A stretch of 64,000 bases of DNA from Andalucia godoyi And28. Taxonomy: Eukaryota > Protista > Jakobida. The translations under genes and the position numbers were made by a program. Numbering within the stretch: the stretch's first letter is position 1; every line of letters begins with the position of its first letter. The stretch covers positions 1-64,000 of the forward strand of contig VRVR01000002.1 of the NCBI GenBank assembly GCA_009859145.1, given 5' to 3'. The notes under the pieces are model-generated. The model was not told where the DNA came from, did not search any database, and saw only the letters and a program-made list of their open reading frames with translations. Below, in pieces: positions 2,087 through 63,726 of the stretch.

Positions 2087-2336
2087 CCGCTGCCACTTAT
2101 TGCAATATGATGAAGCAATCTAAAGTGCACGCAAACAAAAACACTGCCACGCGCCATGCGCATGTGTTTCCTATCTTAAGCAACTCCGTCACACGATGCC
2201 CGATTCGTTTCGCCCCATTTTGATCATGAAATCCCTATATAAACACGCCGCCGCGTTGCATTATGCATGTTGTTGGGTTGCAACATTGATTATGGGTGAT
2301 CAGCGATGATTATCCGTGATTAGTGTACAATGTCGG
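2087..2336 (+). mobile_element. Family A copy A1: ~250-bp non-autonomous Fanzor2/IS607-like mini-element (left end fused to right end)
   Basis: 2087-2261 aligns with the reverse complement of 33236-33062; 2262-2336 aligns with the reverse complement of 32608-32534. The Fanzor-coding interior present in the 32.5 kb copy is missing. Confidence 0.8.
2287..2336 (+). ncRNA. Candidate omegaRNA 3' hairpin and terminus (copy A1)
   Basis: 15-bp stem rich in G-U pairs (TGATTATGGGTGATC / GATTATCCGTGATTA, loop AGCGAT) followed by GTGTACAATGTCGG. Same position and 36-nt length as in copies A2 and A3. Confidence 0.55.
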
Positions 2337-4298: not shown

Positions 4299-4473
4299 AA
4301 TCAATTTCTCCCCCCTCCCCCTATGAGACGCACACAGTCCAGGAATCACTTTGAGAAATACAAAGATGACACCTAATGGACAAAAAGTTGGTCAGCATTT
4401 GAAGGGGGTTTCCTGTAATTGAGAAGAATGACGAGATTTCCGTCTGCGACAATGTCGGCATCGCCAACGGTGA

Positions 4474-4884
4474 ACAGCTTTGTGTATCAACGCTGAACCA
4501 CAAGCAATACGATTTTCTTACCGTGGTCAAGTGTAGAATGTCTTCATTCTTCACTTTTCTTATTCTTTCTATTCCATATTACTGTCTGTGTTTTATATAA
4601 TCGAACCCTCAGGCAGCATCTTTCATCAGAGACAAAACATCACATGGCTCCAAAGACGGGTCTTCCGACAAACCCACACCGGCCATTCCCGAAGATACCG
4701 AGAACCAAGGAATCCGATGATCTCCTCTCCTCGGAGGCCGAGAGCAAGAAGAAGCAATGACCCTTTGGTGCAAAGCAATCTGCATTGAAGAGTTGATGCT
4801 CGTCCCCAAATAAAAACACTTGACTTGGATCTGTCTTCGGTTATAGCTTAGCCCGATGACCAATCATGATTCATGTTTTTGGCG
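4474..4884 (-). repeat. Family B dispersed element, copy B1 (diverged, inverted orientation)
   Basis: Shares both ends (CGCCAAAA(A)CATGAATC ... TACACAAAGCTGT) and internal blocks with 24799-25180, 50339-50993 and 55144-55747. Confidence 0.85.
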
Positions 4885-5780
4885 ACCGGTGCAACAAGAA
4901 TGAGGAGGGGAAAAAAAACCCTGATTGTTTCCAAGGAGATGTTTTACTCGAACCTTTTGGGCCAACCAATATTTTTTATGTTTAACAATCTCGCGCGCTT
5001 GCGGCCAGCTGTGGAGCATGCGAACGAACCCCGGACAAAAACGAGTGATGGGTGGAACGATAATTTGTTTTGGCAAGGAGAACGTCTTCGATTCGTCGAA
5101 GAAGCCATTGCACAGGAAGGAGCGATCCGACCAAAATGATCGCAACCTCCCCGTTTGTTGACGGACCGGTGCAAAACTGCAGAGCAGCCCTTCTTCTGCA
5201 GCTGGATAGAAGGCAGGTTCACGGTGCGATCTCTTTGGACTTGATTTTGGAGCGTGTGTCAGCAAAAGACCACAATCTGATTGCATATCCGAATCGCGCA
5301 CGCCGAAAATTTCTTTCCCTGGAGCGGTTCGTGGACTCGTGTCGGAGCAATATTCTTGAGAATGTTCTCGGACAATCCAGGGGGGGGCCTGCATTGCTCG
5401 CAATCCTTACGTCCTGTCCAGGTCCACAAGGCAAGAACCTTCAAGTCTTGCAGTTGGTTGGACAAATTTGGGAATGCTGTGTCGTTTTGGCAAAATGGAT
5501 GACGTAGCAAAAACGATGGTGACCGGGAAACTCGGGGAAGCACGACAAGCGGAGAGGTTTGTTTGTCTGATTTGCAGCTCATTTTTTACACCATTGCGCT
5601 GTCGATTCGTTCTCCTTCTTTTCCAGCTCTTTCATCGTTGTCTCCTTGTTGGTCAACTTACACCAGTACATCATTTGCAACGGGCAGCACGATTGTTGTT
5701 CATTAATTTTTTTAAATTACTATTGTTCTTTTTTTCTTTTCTTTTCAAAACATTCTTTAATTTTTATCTTATATTTTACA

Positions 5781-11557: not shown

Positions 11558-13945
11558 ATGGGACTATGGACACGGTCGAAGGGATTGCTGTCGAGTGCTT
11601 CCGCGGCGAAGTTGCTGGCGTCTGTGCGAAACGTCGGAATCATCGCGCATGTGGATTCCGGAAAGACGACGGTGACTGAGCGCATGCTGTTTTATGCCGG
11701 GCTGATACGCTCTTGCGGAGAGGTGCACGACGGCGATACAGTCATGGACTTTCTACCAGATGAACAAGCCCGGGGAATCACGATTTCATCTGCAGCAATT
11801 TCGTTCGACTGGTCTGGTGCGTCTGTGAATTTAATCGATACACCCGGCCATGTGGATTTTGGCATCGAAGTAGAACGATCATTACGAGTGTTGGACGGCG
11901 CAGTTGTCATTTTGGACGGTGTTGCTGGTGTTCAACCGCAGTCGCTTTCCGTCTGGCAACAGGCGGTCCGTCACGGCGTCCCACGCATCGTATTCGTCAA
12001 CAAAATGGATCGAGAAGGCGCATCGATCGAACGAAGTGTCCAGTCATTGAGAGACAGGCTAGGGTGCGATCCTCTTGTCATGCAATTGCTCTCTCCGTTG
12101 CAAGAAGGTTCATCGTCAGCAGACGCATCGTTTGACATCATTGACTTGGTTCGCATGGAGCGCGTGCAGTATCCGCAGTACTTGCGAACACCACTGTCCG
12201 TGCCAAGCAATGCGTCTCCAGCGAAGGAGAAGGACATATGGGACAATGCAGTCCATTTGCGCACACAGCTCATCGAGAGAGCTGCCAATCTTGACAGCGT
12301 GCTTGCAGACGTTTACTTGTCTGCGGAAGACCCAGTCACAAGCGTATCTCCAGAGTCGTTGCGATCTGCGGTAAGGCGAATCACAATTTCTGGCTCCGGA
12401 GTACCACTGTTTGCGGGTGCTGCCTATCGAAATATCGGCGTGCAGCCGTTGCTGGATGCCGTCAAAGACTATCTGCCGTCTCCTCTGGATCGGCCCCCCG
12501 TGAGTGCTCGTCTCGTTCCTTCTGGGAAGCTGATGAAAAAGGGTTCGCCGGACCCGCAAACGAACATCGGCATGCCTTGTTCTAAAGACGGCCCTGCTTT
12601 GGGACTAGTTTTTAAGATTGTTTACCACGAACAGCGGGGGTCAGTGGCTTTTGTCAGAATGTATTCTGGCCAGATTGCTGCGGGGCAGCAGGTTGCTGTC
12701 TTTTCACAGCAGTTTCTACCCAGCAACGCTTTGAAACGGACAGACGAAACGTCTGGCACAAGCGCACCGCCTCTTCCCGTAGTGGAGCACAAGGAGCGCG
12801 CCCACAAAGTTATGAAAATCGCTGCACAGGATCTTCTTCCTTGTGAGAGTATTCAGGCAGGGGAGTTTGGGGCTATCATCGGACTGAAGCATGCCCGAAC
12901 CGGTGATACAGTGTATGCCGCCGTTCCAGGGCCGACGGGAAATTCCAAAATGTACTTACCGAGTCTCCTGAGGGTGCCACAGCCCGTCTTCTGGGCGGCG
13001 GTGGAATGCGAGTCATCTGCTGCCGAGTCGGTGCTGGATTCCGCTCTCGAGGCACTCTGCAGAGAAGACCCGTCTCTGTTGCTCCAAAACGATGCTGAAA
13101 CTGGGCAGCGGCTGCTGTGCGGGATGGGTGAACTGCATCTGGATATTGCGCGTTCGCGGCTGGAGAGAGATTTTCATGTTCCGGGACTGCGCTTCGGAAA
13201 AGTGCACATATCCTACCGTGAAACGATTTCCGCCAGCCGGAGCCTCGAGCACAGCGTTGCCGAGCTGATGTCGAGACCTGTGCGATTCTTCATTGCGCTG
13301 CATCCCAAGGTGGCAGAAGGCGCGGAGCCTGCGGACAACGGACACCTGATATCTAAAGTCTCTGTGGACCTCATCTCAGCGCCTACAAACCTCCCGGAAA
13401 AGCTTCGAGAAGATGTTGGAGACATTTTTGAGTCCGCAATCGCTTCTAGTCTGCTTCGGGGACCCTTGCTTGGGTATCCCGTAGTGGGTGCAGACGTGGC
13501 GATTTCGAACGTCATGCTGGACGATAACTTAACGAATGCTTCCAGGGACACGTTGGAGCCTCTGATTCGTACTGCTGTGGCAGAGCGCATGATGAAACTC
13601 TTGAGATCGAAAGACGTCCACCCGCGTTTATTGGAGCCCGTCATGGAAGTGGTTGTCGTGACTGACAATCAGAATCTTGGGGCCGTGGTCTCGGATCTGA
13701 CGGGATCTCGCAGAGCATGCATCAAAGACATTGGATTTGAAGGAGCAGAATGTGGCGGGAATGACAATTCGCAAAATCGTGTCGTTGTCGCGGACGTCCC
13801 TCTCCAGTGTCTTGTGGGCTACACGACAACTCTTCGATCCTTGACGTCGGGCCGAGCCTCTTTCACCATGGAATTTTCTCGGTATGCGATCTGTGATCGC
13901 AACTCGGAACAGAAGGTGCTGCTCGCAGAACGAGGATTCGTATAG
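11558..13945 (+). CDS. GFM2: Mitochondrial EF-G2 / ribosome-releasing factor 2
   Basis: AHVDSGKTT, RGITISSAAISFDW, DTPGHVDF, NKMD GTPase motifs; EF-G domains III-V (GMGELHL, LLEPVM); short basic N-terminal presequence. Confidence 0.85.
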   Translation: MGLWTRSKGLLSSASAAKLLASVRNVGIIAHVDSGKTTVTERMLFYAGLIRSCGEVHDGDTVMDFLPDEQARGITISSAAISFDWSGASVNLIDTPGHVDFGIEVERSLRVLDGAVVILDGVAGVQPQSLSVWQQAVRHGVPRIVFVNKMDREGASIERSVQSLRDRLGCDPLVMQLLSPLQEGSSSADASFDIIDLVRMERVQYPQYLRTPLSVPSNASPAKEKDIWDNAVHLRTQLIERAANLDSVLADVYLSAEDPVTSVSPESLRSAVRRITISGSGVPLFAGAAYRNIGVQPLLDAVKDYLPSPLDRPPVSARLVPSGKLMKKGSPDPQTNIGMPCSKDGPALGLVFKIVYHEQRGSVAFVRMYSGQIAAGQQVAVFSQQFLPSNALKRTDETSGTSAPPLPVVEHKERAHKVMKIAAQDLLPCESIQAGEFGAIIGLKHARTGDTVYAAVPGPTGNSKMYLPSLLRVPQPVFWAAVECESSAAESVLDSALEALCREDPSLLLQNDAETGQRLLCGMGELHLDIARSRLERDFHVPGLRFGKVHISYRETISASRSLEHSVAELMSRPVRFFIALHPKVAEGAEPADNGHLISKVSVDLISAPTNLPEKLREDVGDIFESAIASSLLRGPLLGYPVVGADVAISNVMLDDNLTNASRDTLEPLIRTAVAERMMKLLRSKDVHPRLLEPVMEVVVVTDNQNLGAVVSDLTGSRRACIKDIGFEGAECGGNDNSQNRVVVADVPLQCLVGYTTTLRSLTSGRASFTMEFSRYAICDRNSEQKVLLAERGFV

Positions 13946-13963: not shown

Positions 13964-14005
13964 TCTCTCTCTCTCTCTCTCTGTCTCTGTCTCTCTCTCT
14001 GTCTC
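13964..14005. repeat. (CT)n/(CTGT) microsatellite between convergent gene ends
   Basis: Directly visible. Confidence 0.9.
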
Positions 14006-24727: not shown

Positions 24728-24798
24728 CAACAGTAATTTTTCAATTAATTAAATTTTAAAAAAAGAACCCCAAAGAAAGGAAAGAACTGTAGGCCGCT

Positions 24799-25180
24799 CG
24801 CCAAAACATGAATCCCAATTGGGGAGGGGGGGCCGCATCACCTCTTCAATGCAGATTGCTCTGCATCAAAAGGGTCATCGTTTCTTCTTCTTCATCTCCA
24901 CCTCCGACGAGAGCGGATCAACGGGTTTCTTGGTTCCCCGTGTCTTCAGGCATGGCCGGATCTGATCTTGTCGGGAAGTTCCCTCTCTGGAGCCATGCGA
25001 TGTAGTTTGTCTTTGTCACTGATGAAAGATGCTGCTTGAGGGTTCGACTATAAATATGAGAAACAAACAGAAAATAACAGAAAGGAGAAGAAATGAGTGC
25101 AGAATGAGAGAAATTCTGGACTTGACTACGGTACGAAAATCGTATTGTTTTGATGTTCAACGTTTCATACACAAAGCTGT
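24799..25180 (+). repeat. Family B dispersed element, copy B2
   Basis: 3' part is near-identical to B3/B4; 5' part and internal junction resemble B1; same terminal motifs. Confidence 0.9.
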
Positions 25181-25260
25181 AGTTCGTACAATGCCTTTTC
25201 CCAGTTTCTCTTTTTGGATCTTCCCTGTGTCTCACTTTGCGAACGGCGACCACGGCGACC

Positions 25261-29947: not shown

Positions 29948-32452
29948 ATGGAGCCGCCGAGCCCCACAAAGCAGATGATGGATCGATTGCTGAATATCCA
30001 GCCTTCGAGTCCCACAAAGCAGATGATGGATCGATTGCTGAATATCCAGCCTTCGAGTCCCACCAAGCAGATGATGGATCGACTGCTAATGATGAACGGG
30101 CATGCTCCTCCTCCGCTGAGTCCAACGCGCCAAATGATCGATCGACTGCTTGCCATCAACATTGACGTTCCCACATCACCTGCGCAGCGTGCTAGATATG
30201 CGCCGAAGAAATTGGGAATGGAGGAACCGGAGAGAGCACGAATGGAACGCCGTCTCGGTTATCCTGCAGTGTCTTCCTCTCATACACTACCACATCAGCA
30301 GCAGCAGGAGCAGCAGCAGCAGCAACAACAACAACAACAACAACAACAAGAGCCGCGGCTCTACCCGACATTGGTAAACACGATGACCAGTCGAGCGTCG
30401 TCGTCTTCTCCTTCTCCTGCCTCCTCTTCGTTGACGATGAAGGACTCTGGAAATTTCGACGAGGTCTACATGCCAAGAGTCGAGCAGATGCTGGCAAGGA
30501 AACGACTCTCCGAAGGATTTCAGGTTCCACGACGCCACGATCCACCGCCTCCGACGCCATCTTCGCAGCCGCCGCAGTCTGTGAGTTCTCTGCTGAATGC
30601 AGATGATGTCATGATACCGAAACTATCGCTGGACTACCCTCCAAGACCCTCTATTGTACCGGCGTCCGCCGAAGACAAGGAGGCAAAAGTACGAGCGCAA
30701 AAGCAAAGAGCTGAAGAAGAGGCACGCCGAATGAAGCAGTCTGCTCTCGAAAAAATTGAAGTTGAGCGGCAAAAGAGACTGGAAGCGGCAAAGCGTGCTG
30801 AAGAAGAACGGAAGCGGAAGCATGAAGCAGAGGAACAAAGAAGAATCATCGAGGAGCACGAAAAGGACAGACTGAAAGGCGAGATTCAGCAACTGCGAAG
30901 CCAGCTGGAAAGAGAACGGCGGCTTGCAGAGGAAACCGAGCAAAGACGCCTCGCAATTGCAGAAGAAGAGTCCAAGAAGAGGAAGCTGGAAGAAGAACTT
31001 GCTGCAGCCAGAGAAAAGCGATTGATTGCAGAAAAGAAGCAGAAGGCACTGGAGAAGCAACGGCGCCTGAACGAACTGCTTGAGAAGGCACGCATTCAAA
31101 GTTTGCAACAACTGAGGACGTGTTTCCTTGCATGGCAGCAGTATGCAATCGAGACGGCACATCGAGAAAGGTCACTTATGAGAGAGCGAGAGTGGAAGTT
31201 TCTTGCACGGACAATGGCTCGGTGGAAAGCGGCATTTCGGCATCAAATACTGCAAAGACAGGCGGTGATGAAAAAGCAGCTGGAAGAAAAGCTTGCCTCT
31301 ATGGACCGCATGGCGCTTGCCCATAATGAAATGCGGCTGTCTCAGCACATGTTCCGTATTTGGAGGCGAAAGTGGCATGTGATCCATGAGCAACGTCGAG
31401 TTCACGAACACCATCACACGCGCCGGCAGAGAATTGACAGTGTTCTCAGCAAACTACAAGAGAAATTTGGCGATGATCAGGAACACAGCAGATCTGGATC
31501 TGAAGATTACCCCACGGATTTTGTCACAGGAGTCTCTGCGGCCGTTGCCAGCGCGTCCATCGGTGCTTTTCACGACCAGCAACCTCCGTTGTCTGCTCGG
31601 TCTGCCACCGACACTGCAAAACTATCGTCCACCACGGGATCCCACGCGAATCGATTCTTGGAAGAAATGAAGAAGCGCGAGGAAATTCGGCTGATGCGGA
31701 AGCGAGAATTTGAAGATCGGCAGAAAGCACTGCGAGATGAAAAGGTGCGCAAGGATGCGGAAGAAAAGTCCCGAATGGAGCAAGCCGAGAAGGAGCAGAA
31801 AAAGCGTGAGATGGAAGAGAGGCGGAGAAAGAAGGAAGAGGACGAGCGACGCCAAGCGGAACGTGTGATTGCCGAGCAGGAGCTTGCAAACAGACTGCAG
31901 CATGCATCGCAACATCACGATCGCGCGACGCTGCGCTATCGCGGCTTGCTTCCATGGAGACAGCTCGTTGCCTTGCATCGTGAAGCGATTGCGCAAGCCG
32001 ACGAGCGATCGAACAAACGAGTGGAGTCCCATTACTTTCGCAAGTGGGTTCGCGCAAGACAGGACAGCGAAGAGCGCCGGCTGGCCCGTGCATCGGTCCT
32101 CGGTCGAAGAATTCTGCTGCGGCTCTTCTTTGAAATGTGGAAAAGCCGACGTGGGGCGATCGAAATCTTCGTCCACGTTGTCTATGCGGCCTGCGATGCT
32201 GGAATATGTCGTTCGTCTTTCCAACACTGGCATCAACGTGCCCATGCAAGGCAAGCTGCCCGTCGTGCCGAGGAGGTGCGGCTTGAAACGGCTGCGGATG
32301 CGCACTTTAAGATCCAGACGAAACGGCACGTGTGGGATGAGTGGAAACGCTTTGTCGAAGCCTCTCGGTTTGAACGAGAGCGCAGTCGCATTCGTCAAGC
32401 GTTTGCACGGACTGTTCGTGATTTTCTCCCGGACTCACAGATTGGGTTGTAG
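29948..32452 (+). CDS. CCDC191: Coiled-coil domain-containing protein 191-like (centriolar/ciliary)
   Basis: Charged coiled coils, Sfi1-like W repeats, LRYRGLLPWRQL and terminal TVRDFLPD, resembling the CCDC191 C-terminus. Confidence 0.7.
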   Translation: MEPPSPTKQMMDRLLNIQPSSPTKQMMDRLLNIQPSSPTKQMMDRLLMMNGHAPPPLSPTRQMIDRLLAINIDVPTSPAQRARYAPKKLGMEEPERARMERRLGYPAVSSSHTLPHQQQQEQQQQQQQQQQQQQEPRLYPTLVNTMTSRASSSSPSPASSSLTMKDSGNFDEVYMPRVEQMLARKRLSEGFQVPRRHDPPPPTPSSQPPQSVSSLLNADDVMIPKLSLDYPPRPSIVPASAEDKEAKVRAQKQRAEEEARRMKQSALEKIEVERQKRLEAAKRAEEERKRKHEAEEQRRIIEEHEKDRLKGEIQQLRSQLERERRLAEETEQRRLAIAEEESKKRKLEEELAAAREKRLIAEKKQKALEKQRRLNELLEKARIQSLQQLRTCFLAWQQYAIETAHRERSLMREREWKFLARTMARWKAAFRHQILQRQAVMKKQLEEKLASMDRMALAHNEMRLSQHMFRIWRRKWHVIHEQRRVHEHHHTRRQRIDSVLSKLQEKFGDDQEHSRSGSEDYPTDFVTGVSAAVASASIGAFHDQQPPLSARSATDTAKLSSTTGSHANRFLEEMKKREEIRLMRKREFEDRQKALRDEKVRKDAEEKSRMEQAEKEQKKREMEERRRKKEEDERRQAERVIAEQELANRLQHASQHHDRATLRYRGLLPWRQLVALHREAIAQADERSNKRVESHYFRKWVRARQDSEERRLARASVLGRRILLRLFFEMWKSRRGAIEIFVHVVYAACDAGICRSSFQHWHQRAHARQAARRAEEVRLETAADAHFKIQTKRHVWDEWKRFVEASRFERERSRIRQAFARTVRDFLPDSQIGL
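29958..30160 (+). repeat. 48-bp coding tandem repeat (3 units plus 1 degenerate; PSSPTKQMMDRLLNIQ)
   Basis: Units start at 29958, 30006 and 30054, with a degenerate unit at ~30117. Confidence 0.95.
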
Positions 32453-32533: not shown

Positions 32534-32650
32534 CCTACATTGTACAGTAACCACGGATAATCATCGCTGACCACCCATAATCAATGCTGCAACACCAACA
32601 TGCATAGCATGATTGGGAAGGGGGTAGGCCCCCAACACGCCCCTCGGCAT
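32534..32650 (-). ncRNA. Candidate omegaRNA region (copy A3)
   Basis: Between the RuvC-III motif and the element end. 36-nt hairpin at 32583-32548 followed by CTGTACAATGTAGG. Confidence 0.55.
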
Positions 32651-33236
32651 GAGAGACGTTCCCAAGATAGATGTAGATGCTGCGCGCGCCGTTCCAATCG
32701 CGGTCGAGCGTGCATTTGCACGATGAGCAACACACCGCCTTGTTGCCAGACAACTTGCGATGGATTTCCTCCGCAACGGCCGCACGTTTTAGACGTGTAC
32801 TCCTCCGTCACAAGTCACAACCGACGCCTGCCGCCCCCGCGATTTCGCACAATTTTTGAAGAGCAGCCGCTGCTGGAATTGATAATGGCCCCATGTCAAC
32901 ATCTGCCACGTCGTTGTCGCCTTGGCGATCTTTCCTGGCGGCGGCCCAGCGCCGGAAGGTGGCGGTGGATATTGTCATGGGTCTTGCACAGCGTTGCGGG
33001 CGTGACGTACATGGTGCGTTGCATGGACAATAACAATAAGAAATGAGCGTCGCTGTGCGAGAATGCCACGCGGCGGCGTGTTTATAGGGATTTCATGATC
33101 AAAATGGGGCGAAACGAATCGGGACATCGTGTGACGGGGTTGTCAAGATAGCAAACACATGCGCATGGGCGCTTGGCAGTGTGTTTGTTTGCGTGCGCTT
33201 TAGATTGCTTCATCATATCGCAAATAGTGGCAGCGG
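32534..33236 (-). mobile_element. Family A copy A3: internally deleted Fanzor2/IS607-like element with both ends and the Fanzor C-terminal half
   Basis: With frameshifts: LCKTHDNI (32991-32968), MLTWGHYQFQQRLLFK (32902-32855), VTEEYTSKTCGRCG (32811-32770), CCSSCKCTLDRDWNGARSI (ending 32676). This is the RuvC-II / Zn-ribbon / RuvC-III order of TnpB/Fanzor. Both ends are shared with A1. Confidence 0.88.
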
Positions 33237-44629: not shown

Positions 44630-44760
<131 letters not shown>

Positions 44761-45134
44761 CTTTGGTGTTTTTTGCGCCAAAAATCCCGTTTTCTCTTTT
44801 CCCTCTTTTTTTTTCCTTTTCCCTTTTCCTTTACTTTGACAGTGCGGCTGTTGATGCTGCAGTTGATACAAGAACTCGATCCAATGCGAGAAACTTGAAT
44901 GACCTTTTCCAATGCTGTTGTTGTTCAAGTCTTTTTTCTTTTTTGTTTTTGCGTTTCTGTCTTATCGTTTCTTCAATATCTCGTTTTGCTATTAATTTTT
45001 TTTTTGGTTTTGGTTGTTTTGTTTTTTCTTACTTGAAATATTTTTATTGACTTGTATAATCTCTCACAGTTTCGTTCAGACGCTCTTCGGTTAGGTTTTT
45101 TATTTTTATTCTTATATTAAAACACAACTCGGAA

Positions 45135-50135: not shown

Positions 50136-50338
50136 TCTTCTCGGCGCCGCCTTAACCCTCCCAAGAAAAAAAAAAAAAATACAATAAAATAAATACAGAA
50201 ACATCTGTTAAACAAAACTTTCAGGAGTCACATGAACGCAAAACATGAAAGTCGGGGAATCGGGGAATTTCGGAGAAGAGATAAAAGATCCGGCAGCCAA
50301 AAGACTTTTGTACCATCAACGGAAGCCAGCAGCCGCAT

Positions 50339-50993
50339 GCCAAAAACTATGAATCATTATTGTTGATAATCGGCTAAGCTATCGCAGAAGACAGATCCAA
50401 AGTCACGTGTTTTTTTGATTTTTTATTTGGGGCGTGCACCAGCTCTTCAATGCAGTCAAAGGGTCATCGCAGCCAGCAAACTCCCAACCGACCCAGCATT
50501 CAAACGTTGGAGGAAACAGAATGTGGTCGGCGGCGCTGCACATCGCACCTGAGGACGCTTTTGCCTTTGCTCCTTCTTGTTCTCTGACTTGGAAAAAGCC
50601 CATTCCGAACGCACTCGATCACATCTTTTTGTGATTTGATCATCCGCAGCTTGCTCAGCAAGGTGCGACGAGAGGGGGGATCAACGGGTTTCTTGGTTCC
50701 CCGTGTCTTCAGGCATGGCCGGATCTGATCTTGTCGGGAAGTTCCCTCTCTGGAGCCATGCGATGTGTTTTGTCTTTGTCACTGATGAAAGATGCTGCTT
50801 GAGGGTTTTGATTATAAATATGAGAAACAAACAGAAAATAACAGAAAATAACAGAAAATAACAGAAAATAACAGAAAGGAGAAGAAATGAGTGCAGAATG
50901 AGAGAAATTCTGGACTTGACTACGGTAGGAGCATCGCGTCCCCCAATAGGGTTGGATAAGCAACTTCCGGTATGATGTTGTTTGATGTTCAAC
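50339..50993 (+). repeat. Family B dispersed element, copy B3 (long form)
   Basis: Nearly identical to B4 over ~550 bp. Carries an expanded AACAGAAAAT tandem and a ~45-nt extra segment flanked by CGGTA. Confidence 0.92.
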
Positions 50994-51174
50994 ATCGACA
51001 GACAAGGCTAGCAGCCGTTGCGAGGCACTCTCCCGCGCCACCCACCCTGGCAGGCGCCATTCCAGCAACGTTTTTGCGTGTATTATTCATTTATTTATTT
51101 AGTTTGTTTCCCTTTCTCCTCTTCTGAGAGAACGAAGGAAGGCATTGGGGACTTTTTGATTTCTATTGACGATC

Positions 51175-54616: not shown

Positions 54617-54655
<39 letters not shown>

Positions 54656-54921: not shown

Positions 54922-55143
54922 TCCCCACACCGTACGTCAGCCCGCACCAGCCAAGAAGAAGAAGAACAAGCCGAAGACGACAAAGATGATGAAAAGATGA
55001 AGATATTTGCAGTTCCAAGACGCGCGCATACTCGGAATGCTCTTTTACAAACTGTGCACATGACTTGAGGTCCTTTGAGGACTCCCAAGTCACGAAATAG
55101 CGACTCCTGCTTCTCTTTTCGTTTCATGCAAACGATTTCCGTT

Positions 55144-55747
55144 CGCTAAAACATGAATCATTATTGTTGATAATCGGCTAAGCTATCGCAGAAGACAGAT
55201 CCAAAGTCACGTGTTTTTTTGATTTTTTATTGGGGGCGTGCACCAGCTCTTCAATGCAGTCAAAGGGTCATCGCAGCCAGCAAACTCCCAACCGACCCAG
55301 CATTCAAACGTTGGAGGAAACAGAATGTGGTCGGCGGCGCTGCACATCGCACCTGAGGACGCTTTTGCCTTTGCTCCTTCTTGTTCTCTGACTTGGAAAA
55401 AGCCCATTCCGAACGCACTCGATCACATCTTTTTGTGATTTGATCATCCGCAGCTTGCTCAGCAAGGTGCGACGAGAGGGGGGATCAACGGGTTTCTTGG
55501 TTCCCCGTGTCTTCAGGCATGGCCGGATCTGATCTTGTCGGGAAGTTCCCTCTCTGGAGCCATGCGATGTGTTTTGTCTTTGTCACTGATGAAAGATGCT
55601 GCTTGAGGGTTTTGATTATATATATGAGAAACAAACAGAAAATAACAGAAAGGAGAAGAAATGAGTGCAGAATGAGAGAAATTCTGGACTTGACTACGGT
55701 ACGAAAATCGTATTGTTTTGATGTTCACCGTTCATACACAAAGCTGT
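55144..55747 (+). repeat. Family B dispersed element, copy B4 (long form, both ends)
   Basis: Nearly identical to B3; terminal TACACAAAGCTGT shared with B1 and B2. Confidence 0.92.

Positions 55748-59835: not shown

Positions 59836-59874
<39 letters not shown>
59836..59874. repeat. (GA)n tract abutting the Mpv17-family ATG
   Basis: Directly visible. Confidence 0.9.
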
Positions 59875-61124: not shown

Positions 61125-62795
61125 TCAGACAGCACCCCGACGCCGGCCGATTAGAACAGCCACACCAAGAACAGCTGCAACAGCAACGGAAAGCGCTGCA
61201 AATCGCCAGGAAGAAGGCACAATCGATCGAAGGGGAAACGCAGAATGTTTCTCAGCTTCCGAGAACGTCAAGCATGGAAACTCGCGGTCGTCCGAATATA
61301 CAGGTAATGTAAGGATGCTGGGGAGCTGCCCGTCCAACGGTCCTGCCGAGATGGACGATAAATTCAAGGACATCTTGGAAGCATCAGATTTGCGCCAGCG
61401 CCGGATCGCAAATGAGGGTGAAGTAAGTGGATCTTGTGCGTCAGCGATAGCGCTCTGAACGTCGGGTGCATTCATATGCATGGCAGCGTCGCGAGCGGGA
61501 TGATCTGCCACAGTCGAGTTTGGTGAAAACACCAATCGCTTCACAATGGCGCTCCTGGGAGTTCTCATCGCCGATTTTTCTCGAGACTCGTGCAGAGGAG
61601 TTGTGAAGCAAGAAGCTTGGGAAGCATGTTGATGCGCGCTTGGCGGCCTGCTGCAAAAACTGCTTTGAGCATCCTGTAGTTGAATGGGTGACGCCAGCGC
61701 GTGTGAACGAGAGGAATCTGGTGATGACGTTGCCAAAGTCATCGGCGCAGCTGTTTGCTTCGGTGCCTGGCTCTGGGAGAAGTCGACTACTTCATTGCAG
61801 GATCTGGTATCGCGATGTCCAGCAGAAGGGTCGTGCATGGTGATGTTGCTCTGCGACGCTTCTGAGCTTCTGAGACTCCAATGTGGAGCATGAAAAGATC
61901 TCTCGGAGACGTCAACAGCTGCAGAAGCTGGCATGGCACCGTTTCTGATTTCTATCCGAGTCGCCAAGCTTGCAAACAGGAGGCGGAGACGGAAGCAGCA
62001 GTTCGTATGAAGACAAAGTTCGTGCACAAGCTTCCAATAGGATTCCCAGAAGGCCTGGCTCGCATCGTCGACAGCTTCGAAATAGAGAGGTGCATCGTGA
62101 TCGCCACACCCAGGACAGTTCCAGTTCTTGGCTTCGTGGATCCATCGTCGAACGCACGAGAGGATATCCGAATGAGAGATTTTAGAAGGTTCGGCAGAGT
62201 ATGCTTTCAAAGACATCATCAATACTCGAGAAAGTCGAGGAAACAGAAGGGGCTCCGGAGACGACGTGAACTCTTCCTCCGACAGACACGTTCTCCTAGA
62301 CGACACCACTTCCAATGCCGATCGCATCACACATTCGTGCAGTTCCGACCAGCATTGCAGAATGCCGTCGATAAAGTGCACGAATAGCCTTCTCAATCGC
62401 TCCCGCTCCTGCAGAAACGTCGACCCGGATGTGTTCTTGCTGTGACTGCCACGATCAACTGCAAACCGCTCAAACATCTCTTCAACCGCCGCGCCAGCAT
62501 TCAGTTCAATCGCTCCAAGCAGCGCCTGGCTTGACAGCAGACATGCACACATCCAGTCCTGATAATCATCCTCCGAATATACTGAGCGTGTGTCCGGACG
62601 ACTTCTGGACAAGACTTCAAGAGCTTCGAGAGCGTCGGCAACCAAACGAGGCAGCGATCCGGCGTCGAAGCGAGCGGTTGAATGGACATCGCCAGGAGAG
62701 CTGTTCTGAATGTTACGCATTGTGGCGACGCATTCATAGTACTCCGATTGCATTATTTTAAAAAAGTCCCATTCTGCGGCTTGAAGCTGTGTCAT
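61125..62795 (-). CDS. Hypothetical tail-anchored membrane protein
   Basis: 556-aa ORF: helical N-terminal half, Ser/Pro-rich linker, C-terminal TM followed by RRR. Confidence 0.75.
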   Translation of the reverse strand: MTQLQAAEWDFFKIMQSEYYECVATMRNIQNSSPGDVHSTARFDAGSLPRLVADALEALEVLSRSRPDTRSVYSEDDYQDWMCACLLSSQALLGAIELNAGAAVEEMFERFAVDRGSHSKNTSGSTFLQERERLRRLFVHFIDGILQCWSELHECVMRSALEVVSSRRTCLSEEEFTSSPEPLLFPRLSRVLMMSLKAYSAEPSKISHSDILSCVRRWIHEAKNWNCPGCGDHDAPLYFEAVDDASQAFWESYWKLVHELCLHTNCCFRLRLLFASLATRIEIRNGAMPASAAVDVSERSFHAPHWSLRSSEASQSNITMHDPSAGHRDTRSCNEVVDFSQSQAPKQTAAPMTLATSSPDSSRSHALASPIQLQDAQSSFCSRPPSAHQHASQASCFTTPLHESREKSAMRTPRSAIVKRLVFSPNSTVADHPARDAAMHMNAPDVQSAIADAQDPLTSPSFAIRRWRKSDASKMSLNLSSISAGPLDGQLPSILTLPVYSDDREFPCLTFSEAEKHSAFPLRSIVPSSWRFAALSVAVAAVLGVAVLIGRRRGAV

Positions 62796-63067
62796 GTACC
62801 ATAAAATATTTAAATGAGTTTTTGTTTTGTTTTCTTTTTGGGTACACGGGGGCCGTTAAAACCCTGACGTGACAGCGTGGGACATTTCCATACAAGCAGA
62901 CCTCTCGGGTTGCCGATGCGCTCGGGACAATCGCCTGCGTTGCACATTCGAAGCATGAAAATGGGCGCCGTAGCCGAGTGGCTTTTCAGAGCGTCCTGAA
63001 TGCATCTGACGGCCAGCCCAAGTGCTCACGCTAAATCACAAAACACTGTACGGCGTTACGGCGTACT

Positions 63068-63490
63068 GCTCGCCAGATTATTGATCATCGGCTAAAGCTA
63101 TCATCGAAGGCAGATCCAAGCCACATGTTCTTTTTATTGTATTTTTGGGCACCAACTCTCCAATCCTGATCGTTCTGCACCAAGGGATCATCGCAACCAA
63201 CACATTCCCCAAGCGATTCAACATTCAAAATTGAACGATGATTGCGAACAGTGTTGGTCGCGTGGATGCGAAAACTAGCATCTCTCATTTGAGGACGCTG
63301 GAAATGCTCCAGACTACCGATCTTCTCGTGGATACGGAACATCCCGTGCATCCTTTCGTCGTGTATGGCTCTTTCACAACCTGGATTGCCGTCCCCAACT
63401 AAAGAAATGCTGGAAAGGAAATCTTTGTGCCAGTGAAGCATAATCCAAATGGTCGAGGGGCGGTTCTGATGCCGCCTGTCGTACGAGAAT
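63068..63490 (+). repeat. Family B element, copy B5 (most diverged; least disrupted reading frame)
   Basis: ATCGGCTAAAGCTATCATCGAAGGCAGATCCAAG, CACCAAGGGATCATCGC and TTTGAGGACGCT blocks align with B3/B4. Confidence 0.7.
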
Positions 63491-63558
63491 GACAAAGCAG
63501 GAGATTGTCATTGTCGCATCGCATTTGCTCCTTTCGCTTTCGCTCTTTCTTTTTCGTC

Positions 63559-63726
63559 CTCTCTCTCTCTTTCTCTCTCTTTCTCTCTCTTTCTCTCTCT
63601 CTCTTTCTCTTTCTCTCTCTTTCTCTCTCTCTCTGTCTCTCTCTCTTTCTCTCTCTTTCTCTCTCTCTCTTTCTCTCTCTCTTTGTCTCTCTCTCTCTGT
63701 CTCTCTCTCTCTGTCTCTCTCTCTTT
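63559..63726. repeat. Imperfect (CT)n/CTTT tract upstream of the last gene
   Basis: Directly visible. Confidence 0.9.

Follow-up and report, generated by a model that had tools for sequence, protein, structure and literature searches.

The first 64 kb of the 538-kb nuclear contig VRVR01000002.1 of Andalucia godoyi (assembly GCA_009859145.1; hereafter the window) contain a dispersed repeat, Family B, which we identified in five copies by blastn, all-against-all comparison and MAFFT alignment. On balance, Family B is probably an unclassified, non-autonomous, transposon-like interspersed repeat that carries a relic open reading frame (ORF). The family is new, but its kind is familiar and it does not represent a novel type of system; it reveals neither a hidden kinase nor a new kind of gene-fragment spread. 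The genome of A. godoyi is compact, intron-poor and about 20 Mb in size (PMC7050145), and its authors set aside subtelomeric scaffolds rich in transposon- or viral-like sequence (PMC7050145). No description of repeats in this 20-Mb genome was found in the genome paper (PMC7050145) or in a full-text literature search; a catalogued interspersed family is thus a small, useful addition, and a Family B catalogue would aid spacer and promoter annotation in a phylogenetically important protist.

A blastn search with positions 4301–5000 matched four further places in the window, which bears out the five related copies claimed in the first-pass annotation of this DNA. A Family B nhmmer profile detected the same five copies and no sixth, either in the 64-kb window or in 6.9 kb of added contig, an extension through the Mpv17 gene that brings the total sequence examined to 71 kb. 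End-motif searches allowing mismatches returned no additional copies, and exact-pattern scans of JGI metagenomes and IMG/VR gave no Family B match. The sample consists of five copies, which effectively represent two to three independent lineages. B1 (4474–4889, minus strand), for which the annotated span of 4474–4884 was nearly exact, is a full short-form copy of 416 nt with ~79% identity to B2–B4. B2 (24794–25180, plus strand, 387 nt) is likewise a short-form copy. The long forms B3 (55139–55747, plus strand, 609 nt) and B4 (50333–51011, plus strand, 679 nt) have two extra internal segments, of about 100 and 77 aligned nt, which are missing from B1 and B2. B5 (63066–63283, plus strand) is an old, degenerate, internally deleted partial copy; its 5′ part has 76–79% identity to the other long copies, and it keeps part of the first internal segment of the long form. 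As previously annotated, the location is intergenic, within spacers, for all five copies. B4 also contains a microsatellite, (AACAGAAAAT)n, with a 10-nt unit repeated 4.8 times at 50830–50877; about two units are present in B3 and B2.

The discreteness of the unit is supported by its conserved termini (5′ CCG-N-TCGCCAAAA ... ACACAAAGCTGT 3′). Both ends are common to B1, B2 and B3, which lie in unrelated flanks, while B4 shares the 5′ end and has a diverged 3′ end (last 30 nt, 73% identity to B3). The fixed-end, dispersed unit that had been proposed is hence real, although the copies that possess both ends are B1, B2 and B3 and not, as first listed, B1, B2 and B4. We compared the junctions by taking the unit as NTCGCCAAAA...ACACAAAG and aligning the 10 nt immediately before it (5′ flank) with the 10 nt immediately after it (3′ flank); P values were obtained from local alignment scores against random 14-mer pairs. 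Imperfect direct repeats of 9–11 nt bracket three of the four full-length copies, all in register. They are found at B1 (minus strand; 3′ CTGTT-CACCG at 4464–4477 and 5′ TGTTGCACCG at about 4887–4896; score 15, P about 0.005), at B2 (plus strand; 5′ CTGTAGGCCG at 24784–24796 and 3′ CTGTAGTTCG at 25177–25186; score 12, P about 0.04), and at B4 (plus strand; 5′ CCAGCAGCCG at 50326–50335 and 3′ CTAGCAGCCG at 51008–51017; score 16, P about 0.002). The same comparison of 5′ and 3′ flanks gave no flanking repeat at B3. The middles of the repeats are copy-specific, as in target duplications; all copies conserve the inner halves of the junctions (5′ CCG and 3′ CTGT), and the outer halves are no more than similar. 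Because the repeats overlap the conserved CTGT/CCG termini, the true element boundaries and the length of any target-site duplication (TSD) are ambiguous. The imperfect repeats at B1, B2 and B4 are candidates for the TSDs that the first-pass annotation had suggested looking for, but B3 has none and the repeats merge with the element's own ends. The imperfection of the flanking repeats is compatible with old insertions.

These junctions suggest how Family B may have moved. The copies would have been inserted by machinery supplied in trans that recognizes the element ends and prefers targets resembling those ends when joined (CTGT-nnn-CCG). CCG and CTGT would then belong to the element, the insertion sites having resembled its joined ends. 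One option is that an end-joined or circular intermediate integrates at short homology; a second is a staggered cut of about 10 bp at preferred targets, a spacing in the Mutator length class. Integration at short homology and a staggered cut both fit the three junction pairs from which we infer the mechanism. If the junction-homology pattern held genome-wide, it could indicate how a lineage of Discoba transposons integrates.

The copies are mosaics. In its interior, B4 matches B3 at 99.4% identity along 505 nt, with identity up to 100% locally, whereas the termini of B4 (first 20 and last 30 nt) are much more diverged from B3, with 93% identity in the 5′ part and the 73% noted above at the 3′ terminus. 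Similarly, the 5′ part of B2 is nearer to B1 (83–91%, versus 67–88% for B3), and its 3′ part is 95–100% B3-like. B3 and B4 lie 4.3 kb apart and flank the coiled-coil gene. The mosaic copies indicate probable ectopic gene conversion between copies, for example along the B3/B4 tract. Since gene conversion can explain high identity among copies, this identity is no evidence of recent transposition.

We compared Family B with known element classes. A repeat search found no terminal inverted repeats (TIRs), and the terminal 80 nt matched the reverse complement of the other end only at the level of shuffled sequence; Family B consequently fails the TIR test for a TIR DNA transposon or miniature inverted-repeat element (MITE). 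Hallmarks of Helitrons, LTRs, poly(A) tails and TIRs are all absent from Family B, and within 71 kb neither an autonomous partner nor an empty site was found. Family B is not a solo LTR, as its ends are CCG.../...CTGT and not TG...CA, and it has no similarity to the region beside the Gag-like ORF at the contig start. B4 and B3 could be taken for an LTR pair, being direct repeats that flank a 4.1-kb segment, but the enclosed 1,096-aa ORF encodes a coiled-coil host protein without a retroelement domain. A SINE or processed retrocopy was rejected on the grounds that neither end has an A-run and that the window yielded no match with ARAGORN or Rfam. The termini and flanks do not fit a Helitron (5′-TC, 3′-CTRR hairpin end, A/T insertion) in either orientation. 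A structured RNA gene was rejected as well, with no hairpins, no Rfam match and fold z-scores of −1.3 to −1.7, marginally better than shuffles. Finally, the long internal segments of B3 and B4 are not introns, having no GT...AG boundaries on either strand.

Three groups of elements resemble Family B in part. Family B shares with MITE-like or non-TIR MULE-like internal-deletion derivatives its short and discrete form, its conserved ends, its position in gene-proximal spacers, its length variants arising from internal indels, and its ORF remnant. Furthermore, its 9–11-nt flanking direct repeats are of the same length class as Mutator-type target duplications. It differs from MITEs and MULEs in the absence of TIRs, in the imperfect repeats that overlap its termini, and in that no autonomous partner was seen. 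Cryptons, which use a tyrosine recombinase, and IS607-like or Fanzor-associated elements, which use a serine recombinase, integrate at short homology and make no TIRs. Family B is like these elements in having no TIRs, in junctions that share a short core with the target, and in insertion sites that resemble the element's own end-to-end junction. In addition, a TnpB/Fanzor remnant occurs in the window's Family A, which starts with a similar CCGCT(C)GCCA. In contrast to Cryptons and IS607-like elements, however, Family B has no linked recombinase or Fanzor coding sequence, and no tyrosine or serine recombinase gene with Family B ends is present within 71 kb. Like Pack-MULE carriers of host gene fragments, Family B is a mobile unit that bears a stretch with coding-like substitution bias, which corresponds to the first-pass idea of a spreading gene fragment; unlike them, it has no TIRs, and no parent gene was found in 71 kb or in public protein collections.

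The coding-like bias was measured as synonymous and replacement codon differences between copies. Over the whole element, B1 and B2 differ by 18 synonymous versus 32 replacement codons in the B1 frame, compared with 5/45 and 6/45 (synonymous/replacement) in the other two forward frames. Permutation of the substitution positions between B1 and B2 yielded 10.0±2.9 synonymous differences (P = 0.010 for this frame, 0.038 for the best of three), and the same test on B1 and B3 gave P = 0.005 and 0.024, respectively. The excess centres on a B1 ORF of 58 codons on the minus strand (4609–4785; ATG at 4785 to TGA at 4609; MQIALHQRV...LMKDAA), which is open only in B1 and was defined independently of that excess. 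Within this ORF, we counted 11–12 synonymous differences versus 5.2±2.05 expected (P = 0.003–0.009; best of three, 0.011–0.028), and its codon differences divide into 11 synonymous and 11 replacement. Upstream of the ORF there is no synonymous-excess signal, and downstream the signal is confined to a 14-codon block, ILxLTTVRKSYC (4/6 differences, P about 0.02). The local codon counts in the first-pass annotation were accurate on recount, but the statement drawn from them, that the copies diverge almost only synonymously, is overstated both for the whole element and for the ORF.

Several properties of the data bear on how far this bias can be read as coding. B2, B3 and B4 are 95–100% identical in the tested region, so the coding evidence is essentially one pairwise comparison, and the signal, which was noticed post hoc, has a P of about 0.01–0.04 after frame correction. 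B2–B4 share indels of 1, 1 and 8 nt inside the ORF, and B2 carries one more; the motifs highlighted at first pass consequently sit in three frames in B2–B4. In the B1 frame itself, in-frame stops occur on both sides of the 58-codon ORF. With this excess centred on an ORF that is still open in B1, a once-coding ancestor of Family B is plausible, though short of established. The earlier conclusion that the ancestor evolved under coding selection thus retains a modest synonymous excess in one frame but is tempered by the broken frame in B2–B4 and by the moderate P values. The synonymous bias between the B1 lineage and the B2–B4 lineage would be the trace of an ORF once under purifying selection, and the ancestor with that ORF may have been an autonomous element or a small gene. 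The B2–B4 master would have lost the frame by the shared frameshifts before being copied, in which case the spread was independent of the ORF.

Searches with conceptual translations of Family B returned no credible relative. No Pfam family was reported by hmmscan at E≤10 for the B1 translation, and at the same threshold the other forward frames of B1, B3 and B5 matched only IL8 (E = 0.03), which we judged to be noise. There was no match to the Family B translation by phmmer against the PDB at E≤10, in PHROGs, or in a word-index search of 5.8 billion protein clusters. An exhaustive HMMER scan of 1.84 billion representative proteins recovered five proteins, each with 5–9 weak stretches; the three of these that were read are unrelated tandem-repeat proteins, hence the scores are repeat-inflated and the matches were judged spurious. 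A tblastn search for a parent gene in 71 kb recovered only the Family B copies, and the intact parent gene whose presence the first-pass annotation had proposed checking was found neither there nor in public protein collections. We infer that the peptide once encoded by Family B, if any, was not a kinase and has no detectable relatives.

The likeliest of the alternatives, though itself unlikely, is that the period-3 pattern is due to chance and that Family B never coded for protein, being either plain non-coding DNA or the gene of an unstructured non-coding RNA. The count of substitutions by phase ([20,19,31]) is insignificant (P = 0.13), the corrected P values for a pattern chosen post hoc are only those given above, the frame is unbroken in only one copy of five, and no protein homologue emerged from the Pfam, PDB, word-index or HMMER searches. 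A chance pattern, however, would have to account for a single frame among six in which synonymous differences reach roughly double the permutation mean, for the coincidence of this excess with an independently defined open frame, and for the second small block, ILxLTTVRKSYC, which has the same pattern in the same B1 frame.

We regard as distinctly improbable the proposal that B1 is a genuine minus-strand gene of 58 aa, convergent with Nramp, and that B2–B5 are decayed duplicates of it or of lost paralogues. The ORF is intact in B1 alone and the synonymous excess falls exactly inside it, the orientation of B1 suits a convergent/divergent gene layout, and the codon-usage score of the ORF (0.06 per codon) falls among those of real genes, being at the 25th percentile for coding windows and in the top 7% of off-frame windows. 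Yet 47 of 182 other intergenic ORFs of like size have an equal or better score, the word-index and exhaustive HMMER searches gave no homologue, and upstream of the ORF lie two ATGs with a short uORF. Moreover, the version that was copied and homogenized is the frame-broken one, and the homology runs well past the ORF on both sides to discrete ends with flanking repeats.

The settings of the copies bear on a further proposal, to which we would give equally little weight, that Family B is a promoter or 5′-leader module, possibly a co-opted mobile promoter, that would supply start sites for the Vma12, GH31 and coiled-coil genes. The 3′ ends of B2 and B3, in the same orientation as the gene, lie 82 nt before the Vma12 ATG (25262) and 80 nt before the GH31 ATG (55828), respectively, and that of B4 lies 164 nt before the ATG of the coiled-coil gene (51175, plus strand); a TATAAA/TATATA patch about 130 nt from the 3′ end is conserved in 4/4 long copies. 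B1, on the other hand, is located between the Nramp stop codon (4298) and a small plus-strand ORF (ATG 5136), and it is directed towards the 3′ end of Nramp. The coiled-coil gene and the divergent cullin gene (ATG 50204, minus strand) are separated by a spacer that B4 fills, the start of B3 is ~11 nt away from what looks like a small ORF on the minus strand (ATG near 55128), and B5 lies between divergent genes with ATGs at 62795 (minus strand) and 63802 (plus strand). B3, B4 and B5 are thus between divergent genes, where a gene start is faced either way, and the two copies in tandem spacers differ, one facing the downstream gene and the other facing away. Given that either orientation in a divergent spacer faces a gene start and that the tandem pair is split 1/1, a position upstream of genes, which the first-pass annotation gave for most copies, carries no orientation signal and little information; upstream placing is what a compact genome allows. 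The downstream genes are, furthermore, functionally unrelated. A promoter role would be compatible with a transposon origin, and the two are not exclusive. The small plus-strand ORF beside B1 (5136–5507, 123 codons from its ATG), which lies between B1 and the adenylate cyclase gene, may be an unannotated gene.

A more far-reaching version of the transposon reading, which we hold to be quite improbable, is that Family B, and perhaps Family A with its Fanzor/TnpB remnant, belong to an undescribed jakobid transposon type that would have no TIRs, would integrate in end-joined or circular form at targets similar to its own junction (CTGT-nnn-CCG), and would have left insertions that now serve as a TATA promoter or leader for the unrelated housekeeping genes Vma12 and GH31. 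As for the original proposal that Family B is a fragment of a Crinkler/CR-type kinase gene spreading as a unit, we give it almost no credence, as motif resemblance is all that speaks for it (YLG(R/T)., W..V...AG and LMKDAA.GFDY), and against it stand the lack of a Pfam match at E≤10, to Pkinase or otherwise, in the forward frames of B1, B3 and B5 apart from the IL8 noise, the absence of a PDB match at E≤10, an exhaustive protein search that gave repeat-protein artefacts alone, the lack of GxGxxG, VAIK Lys, HRD and DFG motifs in the Family B translations, the distribution of the motifs over different frames in B2–B4, and the in-frame stops that part some of them in B1; with no credible match in PHROGs or the word index either, the kinase identity is refuted as far as sequence methods reach.

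The long ORFs of the window are ordinary eukaryotic genes, including Nramp, PAS-adenylate cyclase, EF-2 (an EF-2-type protein gene at 11558–13945), RabGAP, Vma12, cullin, GH31, GNAT and Mpv17. Other mobile-element remnants are present in the window, namely a C-terminal TnpB/Fanzor remnant (Family A) and the Gag-like ORF at the contig start. The long copy of Family A (32534–33236, minus strand) contains the C-terminal remnant, with a frameshift, of a TnpB/Fanzor-type nuclease (EEYTSKTCGRCG ... CSSCKCTLDRDWNGARSIYI), which matched Pfam PF07282 (Cas12f1-like_TNB) with E = 4.8e-10 when its pieces were joined by X, and with E = 0.016 and 0.002 when they were searched apart. The short copy (2087–2336, plus strand) derives by internal deletion, with ~176 nt of the 5′ part and ~75 nt of the 3′ part retained. 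Families A and B have no overall similarity; their 5′ starts (first 10 nt) both read CCGCT(C)GCCA, a weak, post hoc resemblance (P = 0.004–0.03), and their 3′ ends are not significantly alike. At the contig start (1–705, minus strand), an open frame of 234 codons extends past the contig edge and terminates in ...CHECG, with which a zinc knuckle begins. Its match to Ty3_capsid is weak (E = 0.012, below the Pfam cut-off), and it probably represents the Gag of a retroelement located at this end of the contig. Long simple-sequence tracts of the (CT)n/(CTCT)n and (TG)n types, which cross-match one another, occupy spacers at 13964–14005, 44637–44762, 54620–54654, 59836–59874 and 63531–63724. Finally, a tandem repeat at 29958–30087 (48-nt unit, 2.7 copies, 96% identity) lies at the 5′ end of an 836-codon ORF, where it encodes repeated SSPTKQMMDRLLNIQP units.
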